From Lepidodermella squamata (taxonomy: Eukaryota; Animalia; Gastrotricha): a DNA stretch of 64,000 bases. Location: positions 806,001 through 870,000 of the forward strand of contig JBLDXI010000002.1 in NCBI GenBank assembly GCA_047495785.1, read 5' to 3'. Under the pieces are notes generated by a model. It was not told the origin of the DNA. It searched no databases and was given only the letters and a program-made list of their open reading frames with translations. Positions 34,430 through 58,302 of the stretch are shown here, piece after piece. The translations under genes and the position numbers were made by a program. Every line of letters starts with the position of its first letter. The stretch's first letter is position 1.

Positions 34430-35626
34430 TTATTCGGCAGTATCAGAATCACTAGCCGTTGCGTCATGATCTTCATCCTGGTCCTGTTCACTCATCGACG
34501 TCTCCATTTTAGGCGACTCGTTTACTAAAGGTTTCTCGATTAAAGCCGAATGAAGAATCTCATCCAAGTGTTGAATCACCATTTTAACCGCCTCGGGCTC
34601 TTGTTGCGGCTTGACCGAAAGAAACTTCGCAATAGGAGGGCGAAGGTCGAGTTGCATTAGCTCCTCATCGTTTAAAGCTTGATAAGGCGCACAGGTGCAT
34701 CGAGGAATCCAGTGAACTGCTGTCAGAGGCCAAGTTTGAATTCCTTGTTTCTGGCTAAGCCATGCATGGGCCTCGGCTACAACGCGGTTGATAGTATCCG
34801 CATCAAAGCTCTTCACTTCATTTCGGAACTTCTCCAGATCACAGAGGGCTTTGAACATCGCAATTTCATCTTCAATGCCCAACTTTTCTTTGAAAGAACG
34901 ATGAGCCGCAGCGGCTAGTTTTGATTGGAATGTTTCAGGGCAAGCAGTTCTCGGCTCGAATTCCTTGACGAAAGACTTGAGCTTCTCCTCGTCTTCCGTT
35001 GACAACTTGCCCAGGGCGCGATGGGTGACAATTCTGGCGCAATGAGCTGCGTTTGACATGAAAATTCCGCACAGCTTCTGCGCCTCTCTCGTGTCGTAAT
35101 TCTCGGTTTTAAGGACAGGCGGTAACACTTGACCAGCCTCGCGTTGGAAAAACGCCTTAACCTCATCGAAAAGCCGATTCCTGGAATCAGACGCCGGCTT
35201 CTGCAGCAGCTGGTCAGACGATGACGTGCGTTTCGTCATGTTGATAGGCTGGATGTTGAGCATTGAAGGCTGTCGCTTCTCGCGCATACCGGCTTTGATA
35301 CACTGCTCGAAACGGCACTTCCGGCAACATTTTCGCCACACCTGGCCGCTTATGGTGAAGCTTGACTGAACAGAGGCGTTACACATGCTTTCGTCGTGTT
35401 CCAAAGCGTTCTGCGAGGCAACTTGCCGCAGGTAGAACCGCTTACAGGCCTCGCAGGCCATAACTCCACAGCGCTTCTTGCCATCAGTTTCCGTGAAACA
35501 GACCTGAAAAAAATGATGAAAGAATAATTGATTTGTTATGCCTGGTATCTAAGCAAGTACCTGGCACAATGATCTGCCGATATTTCCAGGATTAGGGCTG
35601 AATTCAGCGAAATTGTTGCCTGCCAT
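34430..35626 (-). CDS. Divergent nuclear-receptor-type zinc-finger protein; exons 35626-35561, 35503-34430
   Basis: CQ|VC...GVMACEACKRFYLR...C...RKCCRKCRFEQCIKAGM. Helical C-terminal region with no clear canonical LBD signature. Confidence 0.8.
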
Positions 35627-40322: not shown

Positions 40323-41958
40323 TTATTTTTGCTTCATTTTTTCGAATTCACGACATAATTTAAGAATATAACAATAAATGCAAGGCTTAGAAGAGTCGCT
40401 CTGCAGATGCCGGTCGCGGTTGTCGGTCCAAACCGGCTGGCGATCTTCATCGAGGTCGTAATTGCTGTGATATTTCGCGAAGGCACTACTCATTTTAAAT
40501 GGGTGCAGATAATCCAGGTAGGGTGAGTAAGAACTGGCGATCATTTTGTGCCTGAAACCGTCCCAATTGTCCAAACCAGTCGGATCTAGCACGCTAATTA
40601 CATCATCGTGCGGCACTATGGCTTTTATTGCACTATGAAGCGCGATTTCAAGCCACATCTCATGCCTAAAAAATTGGAAATTAAAATTAATTATAAATTA
40701 TAATTTAAATAAAAATCTTGACTCACTTTGCAAATAAGGATAAAACAGGCCGGAAATATGTCCAATAACGCTTGGGAATATAGAAGAAATCGGCTGGGCC
40801 GTTAACAAGCCTCCGAGGCCCTCCAGTGGCGCTGGTTAATCGACTCAAAGTCGCGTTCCAAAATTGAGAAATTTCCGCCAATTTCTCGAGTTCGTCGTGA
40901 AAAGCGGTGGCGTTTGGTTGAAACAGCCGGGTATAGTACCATTCGGCGTCAGTTCGGCAATCCTCCTTATTGTCCCACGTTTTTCCCGTACATTCCTTTG
41001 ACTATAATGCAAACATTTACATGAGTCTAAATAATATCTGTACCCCTAAAACGAAGGTTCCAGCACTACATTTTTCAAGTGCCTCAAGCGATGTGTTGAA
41101 AAATTATTTTCAATTTTTTAAATATTTTACCGTGTCCACTTCGTAAATTAACTGAGACCCGTTATTTCGCATTGCCCAGATATTGCCGAGGGTTTTATTG
41201 CCATTATCTGCCGTCCAGGTCCAAAAATTGAGCAGCACATCATCCGCAGCTACGAAAATTCCGTCGAAATGTTGACTGATGCCCAATTGATCGGTTAGCT
41301 CTAAAGCTGAATCTAGGCACATGTACGACATTTGACCTGATTCGTACGTTGGCAACGGGTGGCGGACGTAGAGAGTGTCCCCAGGCAGCCGAACGTAAGG
41401 ATTCGAAGCCGTCACCGGCCAAAATTGCGTCGCGCTCGAATCAGTGATGCAGAAAATTATTTTCCCGAATATTCTATTTAAAATCCTATTTATCGTGAAT
41501 TTCTCAAAAAAAAATCAGCCTCACCTGTCATAAAGAGCAAACAATTTCGCTGCTGACGTGAATTGAGCTATGTTGAAATAGACAACAAGAATAGTTTTCC
41601 GATAGTCATTCTGCTCGCCAAAATCGTTGAAAAATCGCCGAATTTCATCCCGCTCCGAAGAAATTGAAGGCCACGCAGAAGACGAAGCTTTAAATTCCAG
41701 TAGATCGCTGCATGTCAGTGATCCGTCTTTCGAATAGCTCAGCTCCTTAGGAATGATGAAATTCTTCGAACTCAGCACTCTATTGCAAATTTTGTCGTAA
41801 AAGCGTGAAGGGTCCGCTGTTATCGCCTTGAATTTCGCGGTTGATTGAGGTAATATTTGAGCTGATTTATCCCCGATAAAAGTCGAAGCGATATAATAGA
41901 CAGGTGTGAAGACAGCTATTGTTAAAATGACCCATTTACTGACTATTTTAACACCCAT
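40323..41958 (-). CDS. STELLO/DUF288 C-terminal-domain-like putative glycosyltransferase-fold protein; exons 41958-41525, 41473-41131, 41001-40727, 40665-40323
   Basis: TM anchor; ILVVYFN, SYMCL, FVAADDVLLNFW, ADFFYIP, WLEIA and HPFK motifs. Confidence 0.7.
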
Positions 41959-42727: not shown

Positions 42728-43207
42728 ATGTTCGAGGAAGGCACAACGCTCGGTTTGTTGAAGGCGACCAGCCTGGCTGGTGCTGGCCTGTTCGCCGGAG
42801 CCGCTTTCAACGCGTCATCCGCCGACGTCCCAGCTCGCAAATCACTCACCCTTGAGCACTCTGTCATGCAATTTCAAGCCTGGTTCAAGAGCACAGCCAT
42901 TCAGCAATCGGTTTGGTCCGTCGCTGGTGGATTAGCCGGTATCGCGGCCGGTAAAATCATGATGAACCAAGGCGATGAGGCCGGCAAGACGTTTCTCGTC
43001 GGTGGTCTAGTGCTTTTCAGCGTTATGCCATGGACTGTTATCGTTATGAAGCCGACGCTGAAGTATGTGCTGGATCCTAAGATTGACAAGAAGTCGAAGC
43101 AAACTGAGGAAATGATGGATCATTGGGCCAACTTGCACCACGTTCGCACTGTCCTGGGCTTTGTCTCACTGGCCATCTTAGTCAAGGCTGCTTTCCTTCA
43201 AAAATAA
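42728..43207 (+). CDS. DUF1772/anthrone-oxygenase-like 4-helix membrane protein, copy 1
   Basis: GLFAG, DVPAR, PWT..M, HWANLHHVRT motifs; intronless. Confidence 0.8.
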   Translation: MFEEGTTLGLLKATSLAGAGLFAGAAFNASSADVPARKSLTLEHSVMQFQAWFKSTAIQQSVWSVAGGLAGIAAGKIMMNQGDEAGKTFLVGGLVLFSVMPWTVIVMKPTLKYVLDPKIDKKSKQTEEMMDHWANLHHVRTVLGFVSLAILVKAAFLQK

Positions 43208-43399
43208 CCATCCAATCGAGCAATATCGATTTTCAGGGAAAGATTCTTTTGATAGTATCAAAAATAATCAGCAAATAAAAAGATGAATTTTCTCTGCAAG
43301 TTATTCAATTTTTCAACAATTATTTTTTCAATTTTTCTAATTTAATTTCGAATTAATTTGATTTATTAGGAAAATATGTTAAAATGTTGAATTAATGAA

Positions 43400-43868
43400 A
43401 TGCTGAATGAAGACACCGTGATTGCTTTGTTGAAGGCGACCAGCCTGGTCTTTTCACCGGAGCTGCTTTTAACATATCACCGCCGACGTGCCAGCTCGAA
43501 AATCGCTCGGAGTTCAGCATTCGATTACGCACTTTCAGGCATGGTTCAACAGCACAGCCATCCAGCAAGCGGTTTGGTCAACTGCCGGAGGCCTGGCTGG
43601 TGTTGCGGCCGGTAAAATCATGCTGAACCACGGCGATGAGGCCGGTAAGCCTTTCATCGTCGGCGGTTTGGTTCTTTTCAGCGTTGTACCATGGACGGGT
43701 ATTGCTATGAAGCCGACGCTGCGGTACGTGTTGGACCCCAAGGTTGACAAAACGTCGAAGCAAACGGAAGAAATGCTGGACCATTGGGCAAATCTGCACC
43801 TTGTTCGCACAGTTCTTGGCTTTGCTTCGCTGGCCATTTTTACGAAGGCTGTTTTCTTCCAAAAATAA
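43400..43868 (+). pseudogene. DUF1772-like copy 2, frameshifted
   Basis: About 10-bp deletion near 43447 and 1-bp deletion near 43480 relative to copies 1 and 3. Confidence 0.75.
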
Positions 43869-44213
43869 CCATTCGATCGAGCAATATCGATTTATCAGGA
43901 TAAAAAATGATTTTTGCCATAGATGATAGTTATCCTGGCTATCAAGAGAATAATCAGTAAATAAAATGATCAGTTTTTCATTTTTTTTCATTTTTTTCAT
44001 TTTTTACTTTTTTACTTTTTGAATTTTTGAATTTTCTACATTTTTGGATACTATTTTTGAATTTTTGAATTTTTCACTTCTTTTAAATGTTGAAATTTTT
44101 GCTTTTTATTTTTCCTATATTATTTCTCAATTTTCCTAATTTAATTTGCGAATTAATCAGACATTTTAGGAATTTATTTTTAAACTTTAAATTCAAATTT
44201 CAAATTTTTGAAA

Positions 44214-44696
44214 ATGTTCAATGAAGATACTACGCTCGCTCTGTTGAAGGCCGCCAGTGTGGCCGGGGCTGGTCTTTTCGCTGGCGCCGCTTTTAACATA
44301 ACAACCGCCGACGTGCCAGCTCGCAAATCACTCGGCCTTGAGCACTCGGTTACGCACTTTCAGGCCTGGTTCAAGAGCACGGCCATCCAGCAATCGGTTT
44401 GGTCGATAGGAGGAGGTTTGGCCGGTATTGCGGCCGGTAGAATTATGCTGAAGCACCAGGGCGATATTGCCGGCAGGCCTTTTCTCCTCGGCGGTTTGGT
44501 TCTGTTCGCCGTTTGCCCATGGACGATTATTGTCATGAAGCCGACCCTGCAGTACGTGCTGGATCCGAAGATTGACAAGACTTCGAAGCAGACTGAGGAA
44601 ATGATGGACCACTGGGCTAATTTGCACCTTGTTCGCACGGTTCTTGGCTGTGTTTCCCTGGCTATCTTAGTCAAGGGTGCCTTCCTCCAAAATTAA
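44214..44696 (+). CDS. DUF1772-like copy 3
   Basis: Intact paralog; ATG at 44214. Confidence 0.8.
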   Translation: MFNEDTTLALLKAASVAGAGLFAGAAFNITTADVPARKSLGLEHSVTHFQAWFKSTAIQQSVWSIGGGLAGIAAGRIMLKHQGDIAGRPFLLGGLVLFAVCPWTIIVMKPTLQYVLDPKIDKTSKQTEEMMDHWANLHLVRTVLGCVSLAILVKGAFLQN

Positions 44697-45589
44697 ACAC
44701 GCGATCAAGCAAGATTAATCTATTAGGAACTGACGTTTGATGTAGATGATAGAATCCTTGGCAATCATCAAGAATAAAATGAGTATATCCTGTGCTGGAT
44801 TTTTCTAACAATTATTTATATATCACTTTGTTGTTCCAAGTGCCATTTCATAAATTCAAGGAACTGATCACGAATTAGGAACTATTTGTTTTTGCACAAA
44901 TTACAACAACTTCTTCGAAAAAGTTTGATTGAAGATCCAAGAGCTGCATTTTGAACTTGGAGCGAACTTGGATGATATCTCCCTGATTGTCGTTGATTTT
45001 CCAGAATCTTATCAGCAATCTGGACCTCCTCACACGACTTCACCCTATGTACTTTTGCGTCACACGTGCTTTAGAAAAAGGTTCAGCGGCATTTGCATTA
45101 TTTAACCTTTTTCCTCAACTTCTTTGGAAATTTCCAGAAAATCAGAAATAATTCTACAGCGGAATTCAACGTTTGACCCGAATTCTGAGTTGGCGAAGTT
45201 TCAGGGTGCCCACAGACAATCGAACGAGGATTTTTCGCCTCATAATTTCTTTTCGAATGTTTTTTTGCTTTTTTGCTTTTTTGCTTATTGTTTTTTTATT
45301 GTATACGGACAATCATAAATAAAAAATATACTCGCGCCTCAAATGTATTTGAAACATGGCCGCAAACGATTTTTTCACAATTCATAATTCATAAAGATCC
45401 TCAACCATTTTGTGCGCGTTTTGCGATGGGAATGCCCCAGCTTCAGCGCTTTTATAGAATTCACATCAGCCAATATAAAACCTACGATTTTCGATAATTA
45501 ATATTCTCTTTCATTTTCCCTTTTGCCTTTTTTGCTAGGAAAAATTTATCCAATTTAAAATTTGGATATTTTCTCTAATTTTATTGAAA

Positions 45590-46071
45590 ATGCTAAATGA
45601 TGACACCATTCTTGCTATGCTGAAGGCGACCAGTCTAACCGGGGCTGGTGTCTTTTCGTCGGAGCGGCTCTTGCTGCCACAGTCGCCGATGCTCCAGCTC
45701 GAAAATCGTTAGGAATCCAACATTCGGTCGCGCAATTTCAGGCCAAGTTCAAACGCGCGGCCATCCAACAGTCGGCTTGTTGCCTAGCTGGAAGTTTGGC
45801 CGGTATTGCGGCTGGTAAAATCATGATGAACAATGGCGATGCGAGCGGCAGGCCGTTTTTTGTCGGCGGTCTAGTTCTTTTCAGCATTGTGCCATGGACG
45901 GTTGTTGTTATGAAGCCGACGTTGAATTACGTGTTGGATCCTAAGATCGACAAAGCTTCGAAGCAAACTGAGGAAATGATGGACCATTGGGCTAATTTGC
46001 ACCTCGTTCGCACTGTTGTTGGCTGTATTTCTCTGGCCATCCTAGCCAAGGCCGTGTTCCTCCAGAAATAA
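45590..46071 (+). pseudogene. DUF1772-like copy 4, frameshifted
   Basis: 2-bp GT insertion near 45650 (GCTGGT-GT-CTTTTC); the rest is open. Confidence 0.75.
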
Positions 46072-46683
46072 ACGCTCGACCGAGTAATATCAATGTAACG
46101 GGAAGAGACCTATTAATTAAAAAAATAATAGCAACCTCAGGAAAAATCTGAATAAAATATAAAATGATATAAAATATGAATATAAAATCATTTCCAAGTT
46201 CAAGGTATCATCCAGACAGAACGATACTTCTTGCTCTTGGGCTAACAATATTTATGTCTTTGATTTCGGCCGGCCAAACCGTGCTACACGCGGAATTAGT
46301 GGGTATTTTTCGGGTTTAAAATTGGGAGCGCATCGTCGTTGCTAACTCCACGCGAGCTAATTTTCAAGGCACGAGTCTTCCCGCATTTTGAGCTTTATAT
46401 TTCAGAATTCTTCCAAATGTTATTTCTCGGAATTAGCGTCGTTAATTTCGCTCTTCATATTTTAATCCATGAATTTTTCTAAAATTTCAATTTTCATTTT
46501 TGCTATTTCGAAACTCAAACGGAAGGATTTTATGGGATTTGTTTCGATAAGAATTCACTCACGGCCTGACCCTTACCAATTTAGCATTTTCCAGGTGTAT
46601 TTATCCTGCATACATTTTTGAGCTTCAATTTTTTATAACATTGAAAAGTTGCTTCTTAGAAAATATTCCTAAATTCAAAAATT

Positions 46684-47178
46684 ATGCTGATTGATGAGGA
46701 CACCTTGCTGCGAGGCCTGCAACTGACCAGCATTGCTGGCAGCGGTCTTTTCGCCGGCTGCGCTACGCACCACTCGTTATGCGATGTTCCGGCCCGAAAA
46801 TCGCTCGGACCAGCTCATTCGATCAGCCAATTTCAAGCCTGGTTCTACACAACTGGCAAACTTCAAATTTCTTACGCTATCATCTCAGCAACTGCGGGCA
46901 TTTGGGCGGGTAAAATTCTGCTAAAATCATCGAAAGAAGCCGCCAAGCCATTTTTCCTCGGTGGCGCCCTGATTCTTGGCATAGTGCCATGGACTGGTAT
47001 TGTGATGAAGAAAACACTGGTTTATTTACTGGACCCGAAGATCGACAAAAATTCCGCGAAAACCGGCGAACTGCTGGACTATTGGGCCAACCTTCACGCT
47101 GTTCGATCGATCCTTGGCTCGTTAGCCTTAATTTCTTTCTGCAAGGGCGCTTTCAACACTTCGAAGCCTTTATTTTAA
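46684..47178 (+). CDS. DUF1772-like copy 5
   Basis: Intact paralog, YWANLHAVRS. Confidence 0.8.
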   Translation: MLIDEDTLLRGLQLTSIAGSGLFAGCATHHSLCDVPARKSLGPAHSISQFQAWFYTTGKLQISYAIISATAGIWAGKILLKSSKEAAKPFFLGGALILGIVPWTGIVMKKTLVYLLDPKIDKNSAKTGELLDYWANLHAVRSILGSLALISFCKGAFNTSKPLF

Positions 47179-48138
47179 CAGACAACACTCTGCCTATATC
47201 GCCTAAGCTCGATGAAATTTTCCTTCTGAACTAACCATTGTATGATATTTCGATTTTGATTAAAATTAATATAGGTGAAATTACGGCTGTTTAAATCAGG
47301 GCAAAATATGCAATTTAAGTTCTCCAATAATCACTGATCAGTAATAAGAAAATCAAGTCTTTTTGCGCCACTTTTTTGCCTCGATTTTCAGCAATCAAAA
47401 TCGAAGATTACTTTTCCCCTCTGTATCGACCAAAAGCTCGTTTTTTTGACCCAGACATGCTAGGAAAAAAGGATCTAGAACGCTAAATCATTCTTGCATT
47501 GGGAATAATTATTGGAAATTATGGAAATTATTATAATATATATTATATTATATATATATATTATATTATATACGATAATTAAAAATCCATCTTAAAATGT
47601 TTCCACCTTGAATTCTCCTTAAAATCTCTCAAGGCAATTTAACGTGGATTTGTTATCATTTAACCTCGATTAGGCCTCGAACCAGCTTTTATCGCCTTTA
47701 TCGGCCGAGTTTTGTCTAAAATCGTAAGTTTTGACCTCAAAAACACGTGTTGACCTATTTTTATAATGAATCGTAGCAATAAACGTAGCTAGCTAAAAGT
47801 AGGTCACGGCTAAAATGCTGAATAATTAGTAACCCCATTTCGATATTTCGCTTGCCCTCTTCTCTAGGAAAAATATCCGAAAAGGAGAGTTGTAGCTCAA
47901 AATTTAGGAGTAATTTTTTACGATGAAAGGTTTTATACCAATATTTTAGATATTTCCGAGATCCCTTCCAGAATACTTCTAATGCCGCACGATTACACAT
48001 CTACAACTTTCAAAATTCTTCAACGGAAATCATAGACATAATTTAGAATTTAGGATTATATGTCTACGACGGCAATTTACGGAATGTCATTTTTTATGTA
48101 GGTAGGATTGCTTTTTATCCTAACGAAACCTCTTATCC

Positions 48139-48633
48139 ATGTTTATCGATGAGGAAACGCTGCTCAAAGGTCTACAACTGACCAGCATTGTAGGATCGGG
48201 GCTATTCGCCGGCTGCGCCTGCCATCACACGCTGTGCGATGTTCCAGCTCGAAAATCACTCGGAACACCGCATTCGATCAGCCAGCTACAAGCCTGGTTC
48301 TACACAACTGGCAAGCTTCAAGTTTTCTACGTTTTCACCTCAGCCACTGCCGGTTTATGGGCGGGTAAAATTCTGCTGAAATCATCAAAACAAGCCGCTA
48401 AGCCGTTCTTCCTTGGCGGTGCTTTAATTTTTGCCACTGTGCCATGGACTGGTTTTATGATGCGGAATACCGTGCATTATCTGATGGACCCGAAAGTCGA
48501 TAAAAATTCCGCGAAAACCGGCGAACTACTGGATTATTGGGGCAATCTCAACGCTGTTCGAGCGCTTCTCAGCTCGCTGGCCTTGATTGTGTTCTGCAAG
48601 GGCGCTTTCGGTACCTCAAAGCCCCTGATTTAA
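48139..48633 (+). CDS. DUF1772-like copy 6
   Basis: Intact paralog, YWGNLNAVRA. Confidence 0.8.
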   Translation: MFIDEETLLKGLQLTSIVGSGLFAGCACHHTLCDVPARKSLGTPHSISQLQAWFYTTGKLQVFYVFTSATAGLWAGKILLKSSKQAAKPFFLGGALIFATVPWTGFMMRNTVHYLMDPKVDKNSAKTGELLDYWGNLNAVRALLSSLALIVFCKGAFGTSKPLI

Positions 48634-49498
48634 AACATTAAAATTTCTCTTATGAAGTAAAAATCGAAAAATCGCTTGTCCTATAATTTTGACTCTTCTG
48701 TCGAAAAATTCTAATCACGCCACTGTAATTTTACATAAAAATTGCAGATAAATTCAAAAAATTTATATAGGGCTCAACAAAAATCACTTAAGTCTCAGTT
48801 AATTGATTTTTTCAATAATTCGATTATCGATTATCGATTATCGGAAAAAAGACCAATATTAGACAACAAAGTATTGAAAAAACGAGATTTTGCTAAAATT
48901 TAAGATTTTCAGTTTTACTATCCTGGTGTGTAAAATAAGCGGAATTTTCAGGTAAATGTCGTCGGAATTGAAGAAATTGGCAAAAATTTCGAAAAAATGT
49001 CTTCTCCAAACCGGTTCATCCTAATTTTCTGCCAATTTATTTCTAGAGGTTTCAAGGAACGGGAAATACTATGGCAACATCAATTTGCTGCAATAATTTA
49101 ATAATTACTTGAAATTCGAAAAAAATTGAAATTTCTCCGAATTCGAAAAATGGTAAAAGCCATTCAAGCGCCTTACCAGAATTAGTAGGAATCTGTCAAA
49201 AATTTATTTAAAAAAAAACATCACTTGGCACTTCATCTCGCTATTTTATTAGGCTTACGATTTCTTTAATTAAATCGGTCAATTTCCATAACACTAAAAA
49301 TTAGCGTAACAAAGTGGGGTCGCATTATTATTGCGCAACAAGTCGAATAAAGAGGTCAGAGTTGCATAATATTTGGACTCATTAGACAGAAAAATCTCGC
49401 TTTCACTAATCATTCATTTGAATTCGATTCCTCATTTAAAAAATTTAAAATTTATTTTCCTGAATTTTTAGAACATTTTAAATTTGAAAACCGTGAAA

Positions 49499-49993
49499 AT
49501 GATGAACGACGATACGTTATTTCGCGTCCTGAAGCTGACCAGCATTGGCGGAGCGGCGCTTTTCACCGGTCAGGCAATCAATACGGCGCTAGCTGATGCT
49601 CCGGCCCGCAAATCGCTCGGAACAACGCATTCGATCAACCAGTTCCAGGCGTGGTTCAAAAGCACGGCGAAGATGGAACTCGGCCTGACGCTGATTTCTG
49701 GCACTGCCGGTCTGTGGGCTGGCAACATTTTGATGAAAACCTCGAAAGAACACGCACAGCCGTTTTTCCTCGGCGGCATTTTGATCCTAAGCACGCTGCC
49801 GTGGACTGGCGTTGCGATGAAGCGAACGATTGTCTATTTGATGGATCCGAAAGTCGACAAGAATTCAACGCAAACCACCGAAATGCTCGACCACTGGGCC
49901 AAGTTGCATGGCGTTAAAACTCTGCTAGGCGCCCTGGCCTTGGTTGTTCTCTGCAAGGGCGCCTTCGCCCTGCCCCTGGTCATCCGGAAATGA
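49499..49993 (+). CDS. DUF1772-like copy 7
   Basis: Intact paralog, HWAKLHGVKT; ATG at 49499. Confidence 0.8.
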   Translation: MMNDDTLFRVLKLTSIGGAALFTGQAINTALADAPARKSLGTTHSINQFQAWFKSTAKMELGLTLISGTAGLWAGNILMKTSKEHAQPFFLGGILILSTLPWTGVAMKRTIVYLMDPKVDKNSTQTTEMLDHWAKLHGVKTLLGALALVVLCKGAFALPLVIRK

Positions 49994-50609
49994 AATGAAC
50001 TTGGCCTCGATTTTTAATAATTTTTCTCCAGTGCTGATTTAAGATCAAGTCTCTTTCTATTCATACGGATGCGCTTTAGAGGCAATTTCCTTTCGAAATC
50101 GGGACTTTTTTGTATTAAAAATTTGTAAAAAAAAATCAGCCTATCGATATGAAATCTAATAAAATTCGCGATCGATGTTGTATTTTTTGGAGTATTTTTG
50201 TGTTTATGATGCAACTGAACTTAACTTTCTGGTAAATCGATTGAACTGAACAAGGAAGTTTTAGGCTTTAGGCATAAGAATCGGTTTAAACTTCAGGCTC
50301 GTGGCGACGAGATTTCAAGCCCAACGATAAATCATTTGAACGATATCATAGGTCATCGATAGGTATCTGGTTGTGGCTATTGAGCTATTCGCTTCTTCAA
50401 CAAGTAAAAACGCTATTTCTTCATGGTTCAAAAATTATTATTATCTGAATTTTCGGACACAAATCCGAATTATATTTTCGAATTATTTCAATTTTCCATT
50501 TCGAATAATTTCTGCGCGATTTATTTGCGATGACCTGGTTTTTCGTCTTTTTCCAGGTCGTTTAGCATTCGTCTACACCATGGCTTCGACCTTATTATTT
50601 TCCTTATGA

Positions 50610-51090
50610 AAATTACTTTTAGAGGAGCCGAATTTGCCTGTTGTGGAACCAACAATTTTGGCATATAACGGAAACCTATTTATTAAGTGCCATTTTCGAA
50701 TAATTTCTTTTAAATTACGACTGCGCCGTTTCTGAAAGTGGGGAAGAGACCTTAAGCTGAAATTCACAGCGAATTTTACCGTAATTATTTGACCGTAGCG
50801 GAACCCAATTTTGGAATTTTCAATGGGCCTGAAACCACTTTTCGAATTTTCGAAGGATGTCATTGATTGATCAGCATAATTTGAAATAAATCATCTTCAA
50901 ATTCAGCGTAAAATTCTGTATAAGACGCATTCGTCACAGTAGAATTCACAATTGTCCTCAATTTCGTAGAAATATTCGAAAATCGACCTTTTGTCTATCT
51001 AAAATTAGATTCCGCAACTTGCAGATATGGTTCCGCTACAGTCAAATTTGGTACAGCAACAGGCAAATTTGGTTCCTCTAAAAGATATTC
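50610..51090. mobile_element. MITE, GGAACCAAAT family, older copy (ends approximate)
   Basis: Inverted ends TTTTAGAGGAGCCGAATTTGCCTGTTG / CAACAGGCAAATTTGGTTCCTCTAAAA; core homologous to 9076-9444. Confidence 0.65.
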
Positions 51091-51679
51091 TGATTATTTA
51101 TATGCTCTTGTGAATAATACGTGAAATTCCCAAAAATTCAGAAAACGCATTTTTTGGCTAAAATTAATTATTTATTTTGCTCAATTGCTCAATTGCTCAA
51201 TTGACATAGAACCATATTTTATTGTTATAAACAACAAAAACCCGCTGTTATTTATAAATAACAGTTGCCATAACGACACTGGAGTAACTAGAATTTCTTT
51301 GGATATGTGTTTTAAGGTTTAGGATTATTTCATTTAACAGGTTCGTAGGGTTCAACAACAGGTAATTTTGGTTCCGCTAAAAGTAAGATCGGTTATTTGA
51401 TACAATAAATTTCATAAATTCCTCTGCGGTCGAAATGATGATGTAGTCGAATTGCAAGATTACCTGAGAAAAAACGAAAAGACACTTCATTTTACAAATA
51501 AATCACGCAACAATGGTATACTTTTGGCACAATATGTTGCGCAACATACAAATTAAATGTTCAAAAATCGATATTTCACAAAATTCTTCGTTTTTAATTT
51601 TAATTTCAATTTTTCTTCCAGCATCAATAGGTACCTCTATTCCCCAAACTGTTTTGTTTCATTAGATTGTTCCATTATT

Positions 51680-52186
51680 ATGTCAAAACTGATGACTGAA
51701 CCAGACACGTTGTTTCGACTCCTGAAACTGACCGGCCTCACCGGGGCAGCTCTCTTCACCGGGTGCGCCCTAAAAATTACCCTAATCGACGTTCCAGCAC
51801 GAAAATCGCTTGGAATAACGCACTCGATCAATCAATTTCAAGCCATGTTCGCAAATACGGCAACTCAGCAAATTGTTTACTCGATCGCGTCAGGCTCAGC
51901 CGGTATTTTGGCCGGTAAAATACTGGCGAAATCCTCGAAGGAAACAGCTCAGGCGTTTTTCATCGGCGGGGTTCTCATCCTAGGCGTTCTGCCCTGGACT
52001 GGCATTGCGATGAAAAACACCCTGGTTTACCTGTTGGATCCGAAAGTTGACAAAACTTCGTTGCAGACGAGTGAAATGCTGGATCACTGGGCGAACTTGC
52101 ATGCCGTTCGAACGGTTCTTGGCTCATTGGCTTTGCTGGCTTTTTGCAAGGGTGCTTACGCCCTACCCCTTGTCATCGTCCGCTAA
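51680..52186 (+). CDS. DUF1772-like copy 8
   Basis: Intact paralog; ATG at 51680 (or 51692). Confidence 0.8.
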   Translation: MSKLMTEPDTLFRLLKLTGLTGAALFTGCALKITLIDVPARKSLGITHSINQFQAMFANTATQQIVYSIASGSAGILAGKILAKSSKETAQAFFIGGVLILGVLPWTGIAMKNTLVYLLDPKVDKTSLQTSEMLDHWANLHAVRTVLGSLALLAFCKGAYALPLVIVR

Positions 52187-52783
52187 ACATGACAGTGATA
52201 ACAACAATTTTCATTTGACCTGTAAATTTTTAAATGAATAAAAATCCAGCATTTAGCTTGACAAATTTCGGAAAAACCCTGATTTTTGTGGCTATAAAAA
52301 TTTGAGATTTCCATAATGAATAAAAAATCTGAGATGTTAAGCGGCGCATGGTTATTTGATGCTGTCTACCGAGAATAGGTCAAAATATGTCTACAACTCG
52401 CGAGAGTCGTAAATTGGTTTACAGGCGACAGGTCATTTTTTGTTGCATTTTTTTGAATCGGCGCTCACGTCAACACGCCTATTTTCAAGCATAAATAGCT
52501 GCAAAATCTTCACTCGCCTCACTCCAGAATTTTGTTGGGTATTAGATACTTCTAGCGGAACCAAATTTTATAGAATTACTTCTCCCATTCAAAAAATTGA
52601 ATCTAAAAAGTCTAATTAAATATTTTGTAATTTCCTTTTGTTCTGAAATTTGGTTTTTGTAAATTTTGGTTCCGCTAATTGGTTTTCATTTTTTAAATAA
52701 TTTATACTTGAGCTGTCAGTTTTATTGTAACTAAGAATCTCACGAACCTTGAATCTTACTATAGAATTTGTATATTTTCGAAA

Positions 52784-53281
52784 ATGGTTAATGAAGACAC
52801 GTTGCTTCGAATCCTGAAAGTGACCAGCCTGGGTGGAGCGGCACTTTTCACAGGCTGCGCGCTTCACTTCACCCTAATCGACGTTCCGGCTAGAAAATCA
52901 CTCGGAACAACGCACTCGATCAATCAATTTCAAGCCGTTTTCACGAACACGGCAACCCAGCAAATCCTGTACATTTTAGTGTCAGGCTTAACTGGTCTTT
53001 GGGCAGGCAAAATTCTGGCAAAAACCTCCAAAGAACTAGCTCGGCCGTACTTTATCGGTGGAGGCCTGATGCTAAGTGTTCTGCCCTGGACTGGGATTGC
53101 CATGAAAAGTACCCTGGCCTACCTGTTGGACCCGAAAGTTGACAGAAATGCGATCGAAACGAGTGAAATGCTCGATAAATGGGCCAATTTGCATGCTGTC
53201 CGAACTATTCTGGGCTCCTTGGCTTTGCTGGCTTTTTCTAAGGCTGGTTTCGCCACGTCATGGTGCGCAAAAATCAAGTGA
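52784..53281 (+). CDS. DUF1772-like copy 9
   Basis: Intact paralog, KWANLHAVRT. Confidence 0.8.
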   Translation: MVNEDTLLRILKVTSLGGAALFTGCALHFTLIDVPARKSLGTTHSINQFQAVFTNTATQQILYILVSGLTGLWAGKILAKTSKELARPYFIGGGLMLSVLPWTGIAMKSTLAYLLDPKVDRNAIETSEMLDKWANLHAVRTILGSLALLAFSKAGFATSWCAKIK

Positions 53282-53369: not shown

Positions 53370-55461
53370 TTATTCGCAACATTCGTATGACATTACAATG
53401 CTATGAAATTCAAAATCACTGCCAAAAAACGCCAATTTCATATTAATCACCAGCGATTCAATGTTCAAACTATTCAGCCAGCATTTATTAGGGTTCCTCG
53501 ACTTCGGATCTTCAATCGGTTCGAAGTAATGAATCGCGTTGTAGTTGAACTCGTAACACTGCAAAATCGCCTCCTTGTACCTCAAATCGATCGTTCGATT
53601 TCCATTATCGAAATCACTTAGCACCAAAGTAGCGTTGAAATTTACAGCTAAAGGCCAGCCATCTTTGAAGCATTTCCAGCCAGTTTTGTAGATCAGCCCA
53701 AGCCGGGGCAGAAAATACGGCGTTTTCGTACAAATTGTCTCGCTATTCAACGTAAAATCAGTTCGATTGAATCGCATCGAAATCGCCGAACCATGGGTCA
53801 TGTGAAAATGGTGGATAAATTCGCCGGACGTTACTTTAACCTTTTTCCGGCCGTAATTAGCCAACCATAACGGGTTGTTCAGGTTGATATCATCCGAATG
53901 GCTGATAATGCCAGTCAATAGCCGTTTTGTACTACGCAACGTCGGTCGTTCCATTGAAACAAAGCAATCAGCTGCGATGATTTTCGAATCATTCGGGTAA
54001 AGCTTAGGGACATTTTCAATTTGAACCAGCGATTTTGTTCGGAATTTTGAAAATATGTCGTTAAGCTCGTTTCCGGTTTTGATCTGTTGGAGCTTAATGA
54101 GCAAATCGTTGAATGATTTTTTGAAAAATTTCAACAGGGATATTGAAATTTCCCACTCGAGTAGTGGCGATGGATGAAAGCCATCTTCGTTCGTAATATA
54201 CAATTCTGGAAAAATTAAAAAAAAGTATTGAAGTTCAAAATTGAAACTAAAAAAGTGGAGTTTGAAAATTGAAAATTGAAATTGAAATTGAAAATTGAAA
54301 ATTGAAATTAAATTGAAAATTAAAAATTTGAAATTGAAAAATTTAAATTGAAAAAAATATAAATAGGAATTTTAAATTTTAAAAATTAGAATGAAAAATT
54401 TAAATTAAAAAAATTGGTCAATAACTTGAAATTTTAATAATTAAAAAAATTGACCTGTGAGTTTAGGCTGGACACTTGTCCAATTATCGAACTTGTAGTT
54501 GCAAATTCGATGCTTCCATTGAATTGAAGTCATTCCGTAAATTTTCGCCAACTTCTGATACGCTGTATCTGCGACAGACGAACATTGCGGGCCATCATCT
54601 CGCAAGACAAGGGGCGGAAATGGGAAATTAACTAGGATAATATGAATAGCCGGGTTCATGCGGCGAATTACTCGGATAAGTTCCTCTAATGGCCGGCCGT
54701 TATTTTCGAAATAATCAGCCTGGAACTGGCGAGATGAGCCGTCGTCGTTAATTGCCGTGTCGATGAAGATCACGTCGTAGCTTTGAAGATTCATCGGCAA
54801 ATGTTCTTTGATACAGGCTGTGAAGTAGTGACTAGCAACGGCGCCGAGGGCTGCGTTATCGGTTTTGACCTCAATATCGAGCGGGCGAAGTGCTTTCGAA
54901 AACCAATCAGTGATAATCGAGACATACGTTTCATTAGGCTAAAAAAATCTAATTTTTTTCAATATTTTTTGAGAAATAATTAAATTATACCAAAATTCCA
55001 TGAGCAGCAGAAATCGACCCGCCAATCACGGCAAAATTCAGCTTTTTCTTTTGCTTGTTTAGAAGAAGGTCGATAAGAGTTGAGTGAAGTCGGGATAAAT
55101 CGCCCATATTTTGAATTGCCTCCTCGTCCAAGTCATTTTTGAAGTGTTTCCGCCGCTTTTTCGCGCTGTTTGCCAACAAATTTGTGAGGAATTTCGACGC
55201 TTCGTCGGCTGGAATCAGTGGATAATCGACCAGTCCCTTCAACTTCCAAGTTAGGAATCCGACATCTTTATCGGTGAAACCTCGTGAGACGGCTGAGCTT
55301 CGAGCATATTCTATGCCTGGGTGAGGCTTCGAGGCGTAATTCGAGGCAGATTCCAAGGGATCATAGGAAACCCGGTAGATGGTAATTAGGCCTAGCAGAA
55401 AAATGTTAAAAGCCAAAATGGCGATCGTCCTTAGTTTTGGCAAGTGAATTCTCGCTCTCAT
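53370..55461 (-). CDS. Type II membrane SGNH/GDSL-type hydrolase, paralog 2; exons 55461-54991, 54938-54455, 54205-53370
   Basis: VIGGSISAAHG, DTAIND, DGFHP. Same 484-bp exon 2 length and intron phases as the 14.8 kb gene; both proteins end in CCE*. Confidence 0.8.
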
Positions 55462-57495: not shown

Positions 57496-58302
57496 ATGAA
57501 AGTTTTTATTAGACATATCAATGGGAAGGAGGACACGTTGGAAGTTGAACTATCGTACACAATCGGCAAAGTGAAGCATATTGTCCAAGATGTAGACGGT
57601 ATACCACCAGACCAGCAAAGGATACTATTCGTTGGGAAAGAACTTGAAGACGAACTGACATTAGAACAATGCAACATCCAAGAGGAGAGCACACTGTTCT
57701 TAGTAGTGCGAATGACTGGTGGTGGGACCACGGCGTTCTTTCGTGGCGATTGTGCTGTTTTTACTTCAAATGGGCCCCCGAGACATAGAATTGAAATTGC
57801 CGTCGAAAAGTTTCACGTTTCCTGTAAATCAGACAAATTGATTTACGGCGAAAACTTTGCTGGCATGATGCTGCTCATGTACAACGGTCAAACAGATTGG
57901 CGTTTGAACGGCGTTCACTGTAAGGCTGGTTATATTTATTTGAGGAAATCGTCATCGATTATGTCCATCGACGCCGCAGAGGGTCAAATTCATGGGAAGC
58001 TCTACAAATCGCTGTTCGGCGTTGAACTCGACGATAAAATCGTGGGTGCTGGTTTCTCGTTTCAGCGCAACAAACTTGTCTGGAATTCGGCTACACTGAA
58101 TACACGCGAGGACGGTTTCCACGATGATCAGAGAGCCATGTCAGAAGTTGAAATGAGATGCGTCTTAATGGCACTGAAGCACTGGAAGAAGTCTGGATTT
58201 GAACGTCAGAACTGGACTGTTGCCGGCTCGAACGTCGAAAATTACACGTCGGATGAATTGCAACAACAGTTGCTGGATTCTTTTACATGCAACCTGATCT
58301 AA
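57496..58302 (+). CDS. Ubiquitin-like domain fused to an uncharacterised 192-aa domain
   Basis: Residues 1-76 are ubiquitin-like ([41 protein letters not shown]), with di-Gly at 75-76; intronless. Confidence 0.85.

Follow-up and report, generated by a model that had tools for sequence, protein, structure and literature searches.

An old tandem array of nine DUF1772 genes resident in the genome of the gastrotrich Lepidodermella squamata

The stretch of DNA analyzed here, which we call the window, comprises 64,000 nucleotides (bases 806001-870000) of a long contig, JBLDXI010000002.1, in an assembly of the gastrotrich Lepidodermella squamata (GCA_047495785.1; 121.2 Mb in 151 contigs). It contains a tandem array of nine genes of the Pfam family PF08592 (DUF1772/Anthrone_oxy), all on the plus strand and arranged head to tail, which a list of open reading frames (ORFs) places at window positions 42728-53281 (Table 1). 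Seven of the nine are intact from start codon to stop and encode proteins of 159-169 residues each. Because every intact frame matches its homologues end to end, no introns are required. With scores of 33.3-46.8 bits, all nine copies exceed the Pfam gathering cut-off of 27.3 bits, the two broken copies (c2 and c4) doing so through their open C-terminal pieces; the excess over this threshold is merely 6-20 bits. Neither a Pfam scan nor a custom-profile scan of the 121-Mb assembly found PF08592 genes beyond these nine, and tblastn found no additional degenerate copies within the window, its long spacers included. A motif common to the upstream regions of the nine copies was also sought, and only AT-rich words and an A-rich context ahead of the ATG were recovered.

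The two broken copies were analyzed as separate open pieces, with their sequences left unrepaired. In c2 the damage falls in the helix-1 region and consists of two deletions relative to sister copies, one of 10 bp near 43444/43445 and one of 1 bp near 43479/43480. This copy reads in three frames, and its C-terminal 126-127 codons remain open. In c4 a 2-bp GT insertion at ~45648-45649 interrupts the first helix; the frame of the start codon ends at a TAG (45710-45712), and the frame entered after the insertion stays open to the usual stop. Hidden introns were ruled out as the source of these frameshifts, the shifts being 10 + 1 bp and 2 bp, and, provided that this is the published HiFi assembly, a gap of 10 bp is unlikely to be a read error. 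The initial annotation of this locus, made from sequence alone, had described nine intronless, co-oriented paralogues of the DUF1772 family, seven intact and two frameshifted. The ORF list, the end-to-end alignment and the HMMER search uphold the layout and the family membership. Both c2 and c4 are indeed broken, and the description of c2 needs amending, since it carries two indels and not one frameshift.

Table 1. PF08592 copies of the array and other features in the window (positions count from the first base of the window)
Feature	Position	Strand	State or content	Length	Subgroup	PF08592 score	Remarks
c1	42728-43207	+	intact	159 aa	A	44.8 bits	
c2	43400-43868	+	broken			45.6 bits	score for the 43488-43868 piece
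c3	44214-44696	+	intact	160 aa from ATG	A	42.3 bits	mechanical ORF starts at TTG 44208
c4	45590-46071	+	broken			46.8 bits	score for 45796-46071
c5	46684-47178	+	intact	164 aa	B1	39.8 bits	copy used for the structure model
c6	48139-48633	+	intact	164 aa	B1	40.3 bits	
c7	49499-49993	+	intact	164 aa from ATG 49499	B2	33.3 bits	mechanical ORF starts at TTG 49484
c8	~51680-52186	+	intact	~168 aa from ATG 51680	B2	34.6 bits	mechanical ORF starts at 51557
c9	52784-53281	+	intact	165 aa	B2	33.4 bits	
Nuclear-receptor exon	34430-35461	-	zf-C4				metazoan marker
Bordering ORFs	41110-41958	-	no Pfam match				directly borders the array
Bordering ORFs	53370-54203	-	no Pfam match				directly borders the array
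Lipase-like exon	54441-55461	-	GDSL-lipase-like				beside an ORF with an N-terminal hydrophobic stretch
Ubiquitin-domain ORF	57496-58302	+	opens with a ubiquitin domain	268 aa			

Nucleotide identities sort the copies into subgroups that follow their order along the DNA, with 76-81% identity within c1-c4, 79% between c5 and c6, 65-75% within c7-c9 and 54-67% between groups. A tree built from the shared C-terminal 127 columns recovers c1-c4 (support 98/97), c5-c9 (89/96) and c5-c6 (95/97) and leaves c7-c9 unresolved; this last group is recovered at 99/86 in a larger tree of 75 rows. In the 127-column tree the nine copies are monophyletic with respect to those of a metagenome contig, L010, described below (99/98). 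As for the larger trees, their monophyly receives 92 in one (151 rows) and appears as a trichotomy in the other (75 rows). A tandem expansion inside this lineage is probable on these grounds. The closest intact pairs have a synonymous divergence (dS, Nei-Gojobori) of 0.68-0.84, against >1.2 between groups, with ratios of nonsynonymous to synonymous divergence (dN/dS) of 0.15-0.39. The open parts of the broken copies give similar values against their subgroup sisters: dS of 0.55-0.98 and dN/dS of 0.12-0.24 (0.12-0.24 for c2 against c1, c3 and c4; 0.17-0.24 for c4), with zero internal stops. From these divergences, and from the uninterrupted open parts of c2 and c4, it follows that the duplications are old, without sign of recent homogenization, and that purifying selection has acted on all nine copies through most of the history of the array. 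The breaks in c2 and c4 are recent, in keeping with a birth-and-death pattern. Thus, the proposal that subgroups 1-4, 5-6 and 7-9 are collinear and arose by birth and death through tandem duplication is borne out by identities, trees and dS alike.

The array consists of resident host genes of an animal genome and is not contamination. That the host is an animal, as the initial annotation had stated, follows from the zf-C4 nuclear-receptor exon in the same window, from the large size of the contig and from its AT-rich intergenic DNA. Spliced genes are also present on this contig. The coding sequences of the copies have a GC content of 49-55%, versus 21-35% in the spacers, and a GC content at third codon positions (GC3) of 53-68%, the lower end of which overlaps that of neighboring genes while the copies are slightly higher overall.

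Our exhaustive search with HMMER returned 1953 proteins at E <= 0.001, and ~30 of the 150 listed matches carried labels; a word-index search with c5 alone gave one match. The majority of the 1953 seem to be bacterial proteins, a judgment based on how their sources are annotated and on gene context in a few sampled cases. Two profile word searches yielded no named animal homologues, returning only Chara, Basidiobolus, Gaertneriomyces, EukProt entries and bacteria. The best match, P0002 (179 bits, 53% identical to c5), is encoded on L010 (1-11865; ENA ERZ25039521 contig_69317). The first ~7.5 kb of this contig have a GC content of 42-45% and carry a head-to-tail run of at least five PF08592 copies, not all of them intact, together with a Sina/SIAH gene and two small Cys-rich paralogous ORFs. 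Beyond ~7.5-8 kb the GC content is ~60%, and the genes are bacterial, namely two-component genes (HAMP, response regulator), OEP and pieces of an IS256-type transposase, so that the junction is probably the product of chimeric metagenome assembly. We found no synteny between L010 and the window, and the small Cys-rich ORF of L010 has no match in the assembly. The closest counterpart of its Sina protein in the assembly shows only 38% identity and is encoded on a different contig, and the organism behind L010 is therefore not a close relative. The next match, P0003, comes from a 980-bp read-assembly contig.

In the 75-row tree the window copies, L010 and P0003 unite at 100/94, and this clade joins the chytrid Gaertneriomyces, a EukProt transcript and the unlabelled proteins P0086 and P0123 at 99/90. 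In the 151-row tree a clade of 35 rows combines the window clade with such other labelled eukaryotes as that tree includes, and has zero known bacterial members. The labelled eukaryotes are Basidiobolus, Pseudocohnilembus, Gocevia, Coccomyxa, Cyanophora and Chara, the last of which lies outside the 151-row tree. The window copies belong to a small, distinct clade, in which their close kin are limited to the L010 copies and P0003. Bacterial homologues with clear bacterial context or names are 26-31% identical, and a pattern scan of bacterial genomes gave four loci only, again at 26-31% identity. A further contig, L019 (2391-6360; ENA ERZ26165887 ctg118454), is gene-sparse and carries three head-to-tail PF08592 genes that sit in a different subclade from the window copies, and it thus adds another, independent array. 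Since this three-copy run stands beside the arrays of L010 and the window, tandem amplification recurs in the PF08592 family. Both metagenome arrays resemble that of the window in being head-to-tail runs in gene-sparse, eukaryote-like DNA.

The AlphaFold2 model of c5, built with a 33-sequence alignment, has a mean predicted local distance difference test (pLDDT) score of 96.6 and a predicted template modeling (pTM) score of 0.89. It consists of four long helices (residues 5-39, 43-80, 84-115 and 125-157) plus a short one, packed as a four-helix bundle, and hydropathy supports helices 2-4 as membrane spans. A Foldseek search of the PDB with this model gave no match at E <= 0.001, and a wide VIA-align search gave designed or generic helical bundles only, with Z <= 13.5, which is background for such folds. 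Solved structures therefore give no functional clue. Residues F23, G25, P36, Q61, P102, T104, W134, H138 and R141 are kept without exception or in no less than 90% of the 33 sequences, and most of these nine positions are retained in a second comparison too. The sequences compared include, besides the window copies and some that are unlabelled, those of fungi, algae, a ciliate and an amoebozoan. The conserved residues belong to a Phe-x-Gly motif in helix 1, a Pro-Ala-Arg motif after helix 1, a Gln in helix 2, a Pro-x-Thr motif in helix 3 and a Trp...His-x-Val-Arg motif at the start of helix 4. Since the polar ones among them lie in or beside hydrophobic helices, they may form a site for binding or catalysis. 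In length (~145-170 aa), four-helix layout and conserved residues, the window proteins match PF08592 proteins of bacteria and microbial eukaryotes. Unlike these, the window clade has an acidic N-terminal stretch, a Pro-Ala-Arg-Lys-Ser-Leu-Gly motif and an Asp-Pro-Lys-x-Asp-Lys loop, is just 22-38% identical to PF08592 proteins outside the clade, and includes a nine-gene array in an animal.

The explanation we favor is that of an old, selected and resident DUF1772 array whose products probably handle hydrophobic small molecules in the membrane, and we put its probability as a whole at roughly 60%. Most likely, the array proteins would bind, and possibly oxidize without a cofactor, small hydrophobic molecules within the membrane; the binding is suggested by invariant polar residues in or beside the helices that persist across distant relatives. 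The paralogues may have diverged to cover several such molecules, whose probable source is the diet or the surroundings, as opposed to an anthraquinone pathway of the animal's own. As a lineage-specific expansion the array is nothing out of the ordinary, the family being known though functionally obscure, and multi-copy DUF1772 in animals has precedent. A broader version of this explanation is considerably more speculative, and we think it improbable as it stands: an old eukaryotic DUF1772 lineage would survive in a few animal groups (gastrotrichs, perhaps molluscs) and would have been tandemly amplified independently in several small eukaryotes, as cofactor-free membrane oxygenases or binders that neutralize quinone- or anthrone-type compounds from algal, fungal or bacterial food.

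Several points weigh against our favored explanation. Helix 1 is only weakly hydrophobic by hydropathy. ChrI, a DUF1772 integral membrane protein of Chryseobacterium peptide biosynthesis that the DUF692 iron enzyme ChrH needs (PMC10214503, PMC11252979, PMC12452194), has no reported catalysis of its own (PMC10214503). The fungal protein HypC does oxidize norsolorinic acid anthrone, with no known cofactor (PMC3202775), and its Trp-centered catalytic motif, QLxxQWSRIFY, is a tentative suggestion by Ehrlich (PMC3202775). The absence of polyketide synthase (PKS) and SAT domains, taken up below, rests on a six-frame, exon-by-exon search, and the published counterpart of the assembly has ~81% BUSCO completeness (PMC11660948). 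In the 75-row tree (150-column protein alignment) eukaryotes and bacteria are interleaved and deep branching is poorly resolved. Finally, our trees were built without molluscan or nematode DUF1772 sequences.

The array may be relevant in several respects. First, DUF1772 is a large family whose biochemistry is known from a handful of microbial proteins, and nine selected paralogues amount to a natural variant panel for the function of this fold, to which the parallel tandem arrays in other eukaryotes add. Second, it adds one case to the question of whether microbial-type genes in little-studied meiofauna were patchily retained or transferred. The array overturns nothing, and alone it does not indicate a new mechanism.

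The chief competitor to small-molecule handling is a non-catalytic role, in which the proteins would serve as membrane partners or scaffolds that stabilize or recruit an enzyme or transporter, as ChrI does for ChrH. ChrI belongs to the same Pfam family as the window proteins and is likewise a predicted integral membrane protein; that ChrH requires it without reported catalysis on its part (PMC10214503, PMC12452194) makes such a role plausible, as does the plain four-helix bundle with no match to a cofactor site. The setting differs, however, in that the window is eukaryotic, offers no precursor-peptide context and belongs to an assembly without a DUF692 gene: our search of the assembly for DUF692 (PF05114), the known partner family, found no match, and the Caulobacter control genome was positive. 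Nor do any genes that could encode a partner lie between the copies of the array. A set of nine paralogues that have diverged yet keep invariant polar residues in their helices is easier to reconcile with the handling of ligands than with one scaffold role. We therefore regard this possibility as unlikely, though it is the one most deserving of attention after the handling of small molecules.

Turning to the origin of the array, an old eukaryotic gene lost by most animals seems more likely than a recent bacterial acquisition, to judge from the sequence comparisons. A fairly recent horizontal transfer from bacteria, with amplification afterwards, would account for the lack of introns, for the patchy distribution of the family among animals, for the apparently bacterial source of the majority of the 1953 homologues and for a GC3 somewhat higher than that of neighboring genes. 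It also has a parallel in the root-knot nematode Meloidogyne graminicola, the genome paper of which counts a DUF1772 gene as a putative horizontal transfer (PMC7593179). Against it, the closest labelled neighbors are eukaryotic and the bacterial proteins only ~30% identical (26-31%), which leaves a recent bacterial transfer unsupported. The duplications in the array are, moreover, old (dS near 1), the composition and AT-rich spacers fit the host, and a sister array exists in a second, unrelated eukaryote, that of L010, whose Sina protein is 38% identical. We accordingly give a recent transfer little credence.

Other animals also carry the family. Bivalves have a specific DUF1772 orthogroup, OG3835, with an average of 3.3 genes per species (PMC8382680), and the bivalve genes, like the M. 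graminicola gene, share with the window the presence of DUF1772 in an animal genome, in bivalves in multiple copies. Among look-alikes in the ESM Atlas, a mostly molluscan cluster named "anthrone oxygenase domain" ranked second with a score of 0.92, which we treat as a lead only. These observations bear on two further points of the initial annotation. It had put the question of horizontal transfer to a phylogeny; with bacterial, fungal and protist homologues sampled, recent bacterial transfer found no support and the deep tree stayed unresolved. It had also held that similar arrays being common in animals and lacking activity would tell against its proposal, and on this score the bivalve genes (PMC8382680) and the molluscan cluster go only part of the way.

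That proposal included the conversion of anthrones into anthraquinones for pigment or defense. In its strict form, the nine genes would encode true oxygenases of the HypC/EncC type, acting on endogenous polyketide anthrones to make anthraquinone pigments or defense compounds. The scores above the Anthrone_oxy threshold, the demonstrated oxidation of norsolorinic acid anthrone by HypC (PMC3202775) and a Gln...Trp stretch that opens helix 2 in seven copies all speak for it, and the fungal proteins HypC, EncC and TpcL are of the same Pfam family and of similar size. At the start of helix 2 the window copies read Gln-Phe/Leu-Gln-Ala-Trp/Met/Val-Phe, where relatives have Gln-Trp-Arg, and the tentative HypC motif has no exact counterpart (the comparison being with the published motif string). 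The helix-2 Trp, present in seven of the nine copies, is missing from c8 and c9. The margin of 6-20 bits over the Pfam threshold is narrow. The nearest relatives are uncharacterized protist, chytrid and bacterial proteins and not fungal cluster enzymes, none of which was identified among the near relatives (with ~30 of the 150 listed being labelled); one automatic tpcL annotation occurs in the eukaryote-rich part of the 151-row tree.

The genome likewise offers little to supply such a pathway. Unlike the fungal enzymes, the window proteins have no linked polyketide cluster, the genes around the array not being biosynthetic, and no aromatic PKS signature was found in the genome; the six-frame, exon-wise search of the assembly also found no SAT starter-unit domain. 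It gave two strong ketosynthase (KS) matches, at C45:355694-356425 and C45:401965-402696, on another contig than the array. These loci were rejected as PKS genes: they are near-identical stand-alone KS ORFs (KAS-like), 46 kb apart, and an NSD-like PWWP/PHD gene comes after the first. The pair suggests a segmental duplication of a KAS/OXSM-like gene. A third ketosynthase match, on C32, is weak and partial. With no SAT domain, aromatic PKS signature or biosynthetic neighbors found, the chemistry proposed by the initial annotation is not supported, and we consider endogenous anthraquinone synthesis by these genes very improbable.

There is, lastly, next to no chance that contamination or faulty assembly produced the array. 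In favor of this reading, the published assembly was made from amplified DNA of a tiny animal with 370 non-metazoan contigs removed (PMC11660948), and the nearest relative lies on a visibly chimeric metagenome contig. Against it, the window sits 806-870 kb into a long contig that also bears spliced genes and a metazoan nuclear-receptor exon, and the composition of the copies is host-like. Nucleotide divergence between the copies is 19-46%, so they are neither collapsed nor duplicated reads.

The remaining features of the window are few (Table 1). Scans for tRNA genes and Rfam families in the window gave no match. The ORFs directly bordering the array on either side encode products of 101, 145 and 277 aa. 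A GDSL-lipase-like exon and an ORF that opens with a ubiquitin domain lie farther along. Elsewhere in the assembly, a Sina zinc-finger query recovered 21 loci across many contigs, 20 of them scoring 27.2 bits and one 27.1. Each contains an open frame of 128 aa (for example, C66:773824-774126, C34:1304510-1304812 and C45:10764-11066), and together they look like copies of one repeated, probably mobile element that encodes a Sina/TRAF-like zinc-finger ORF.

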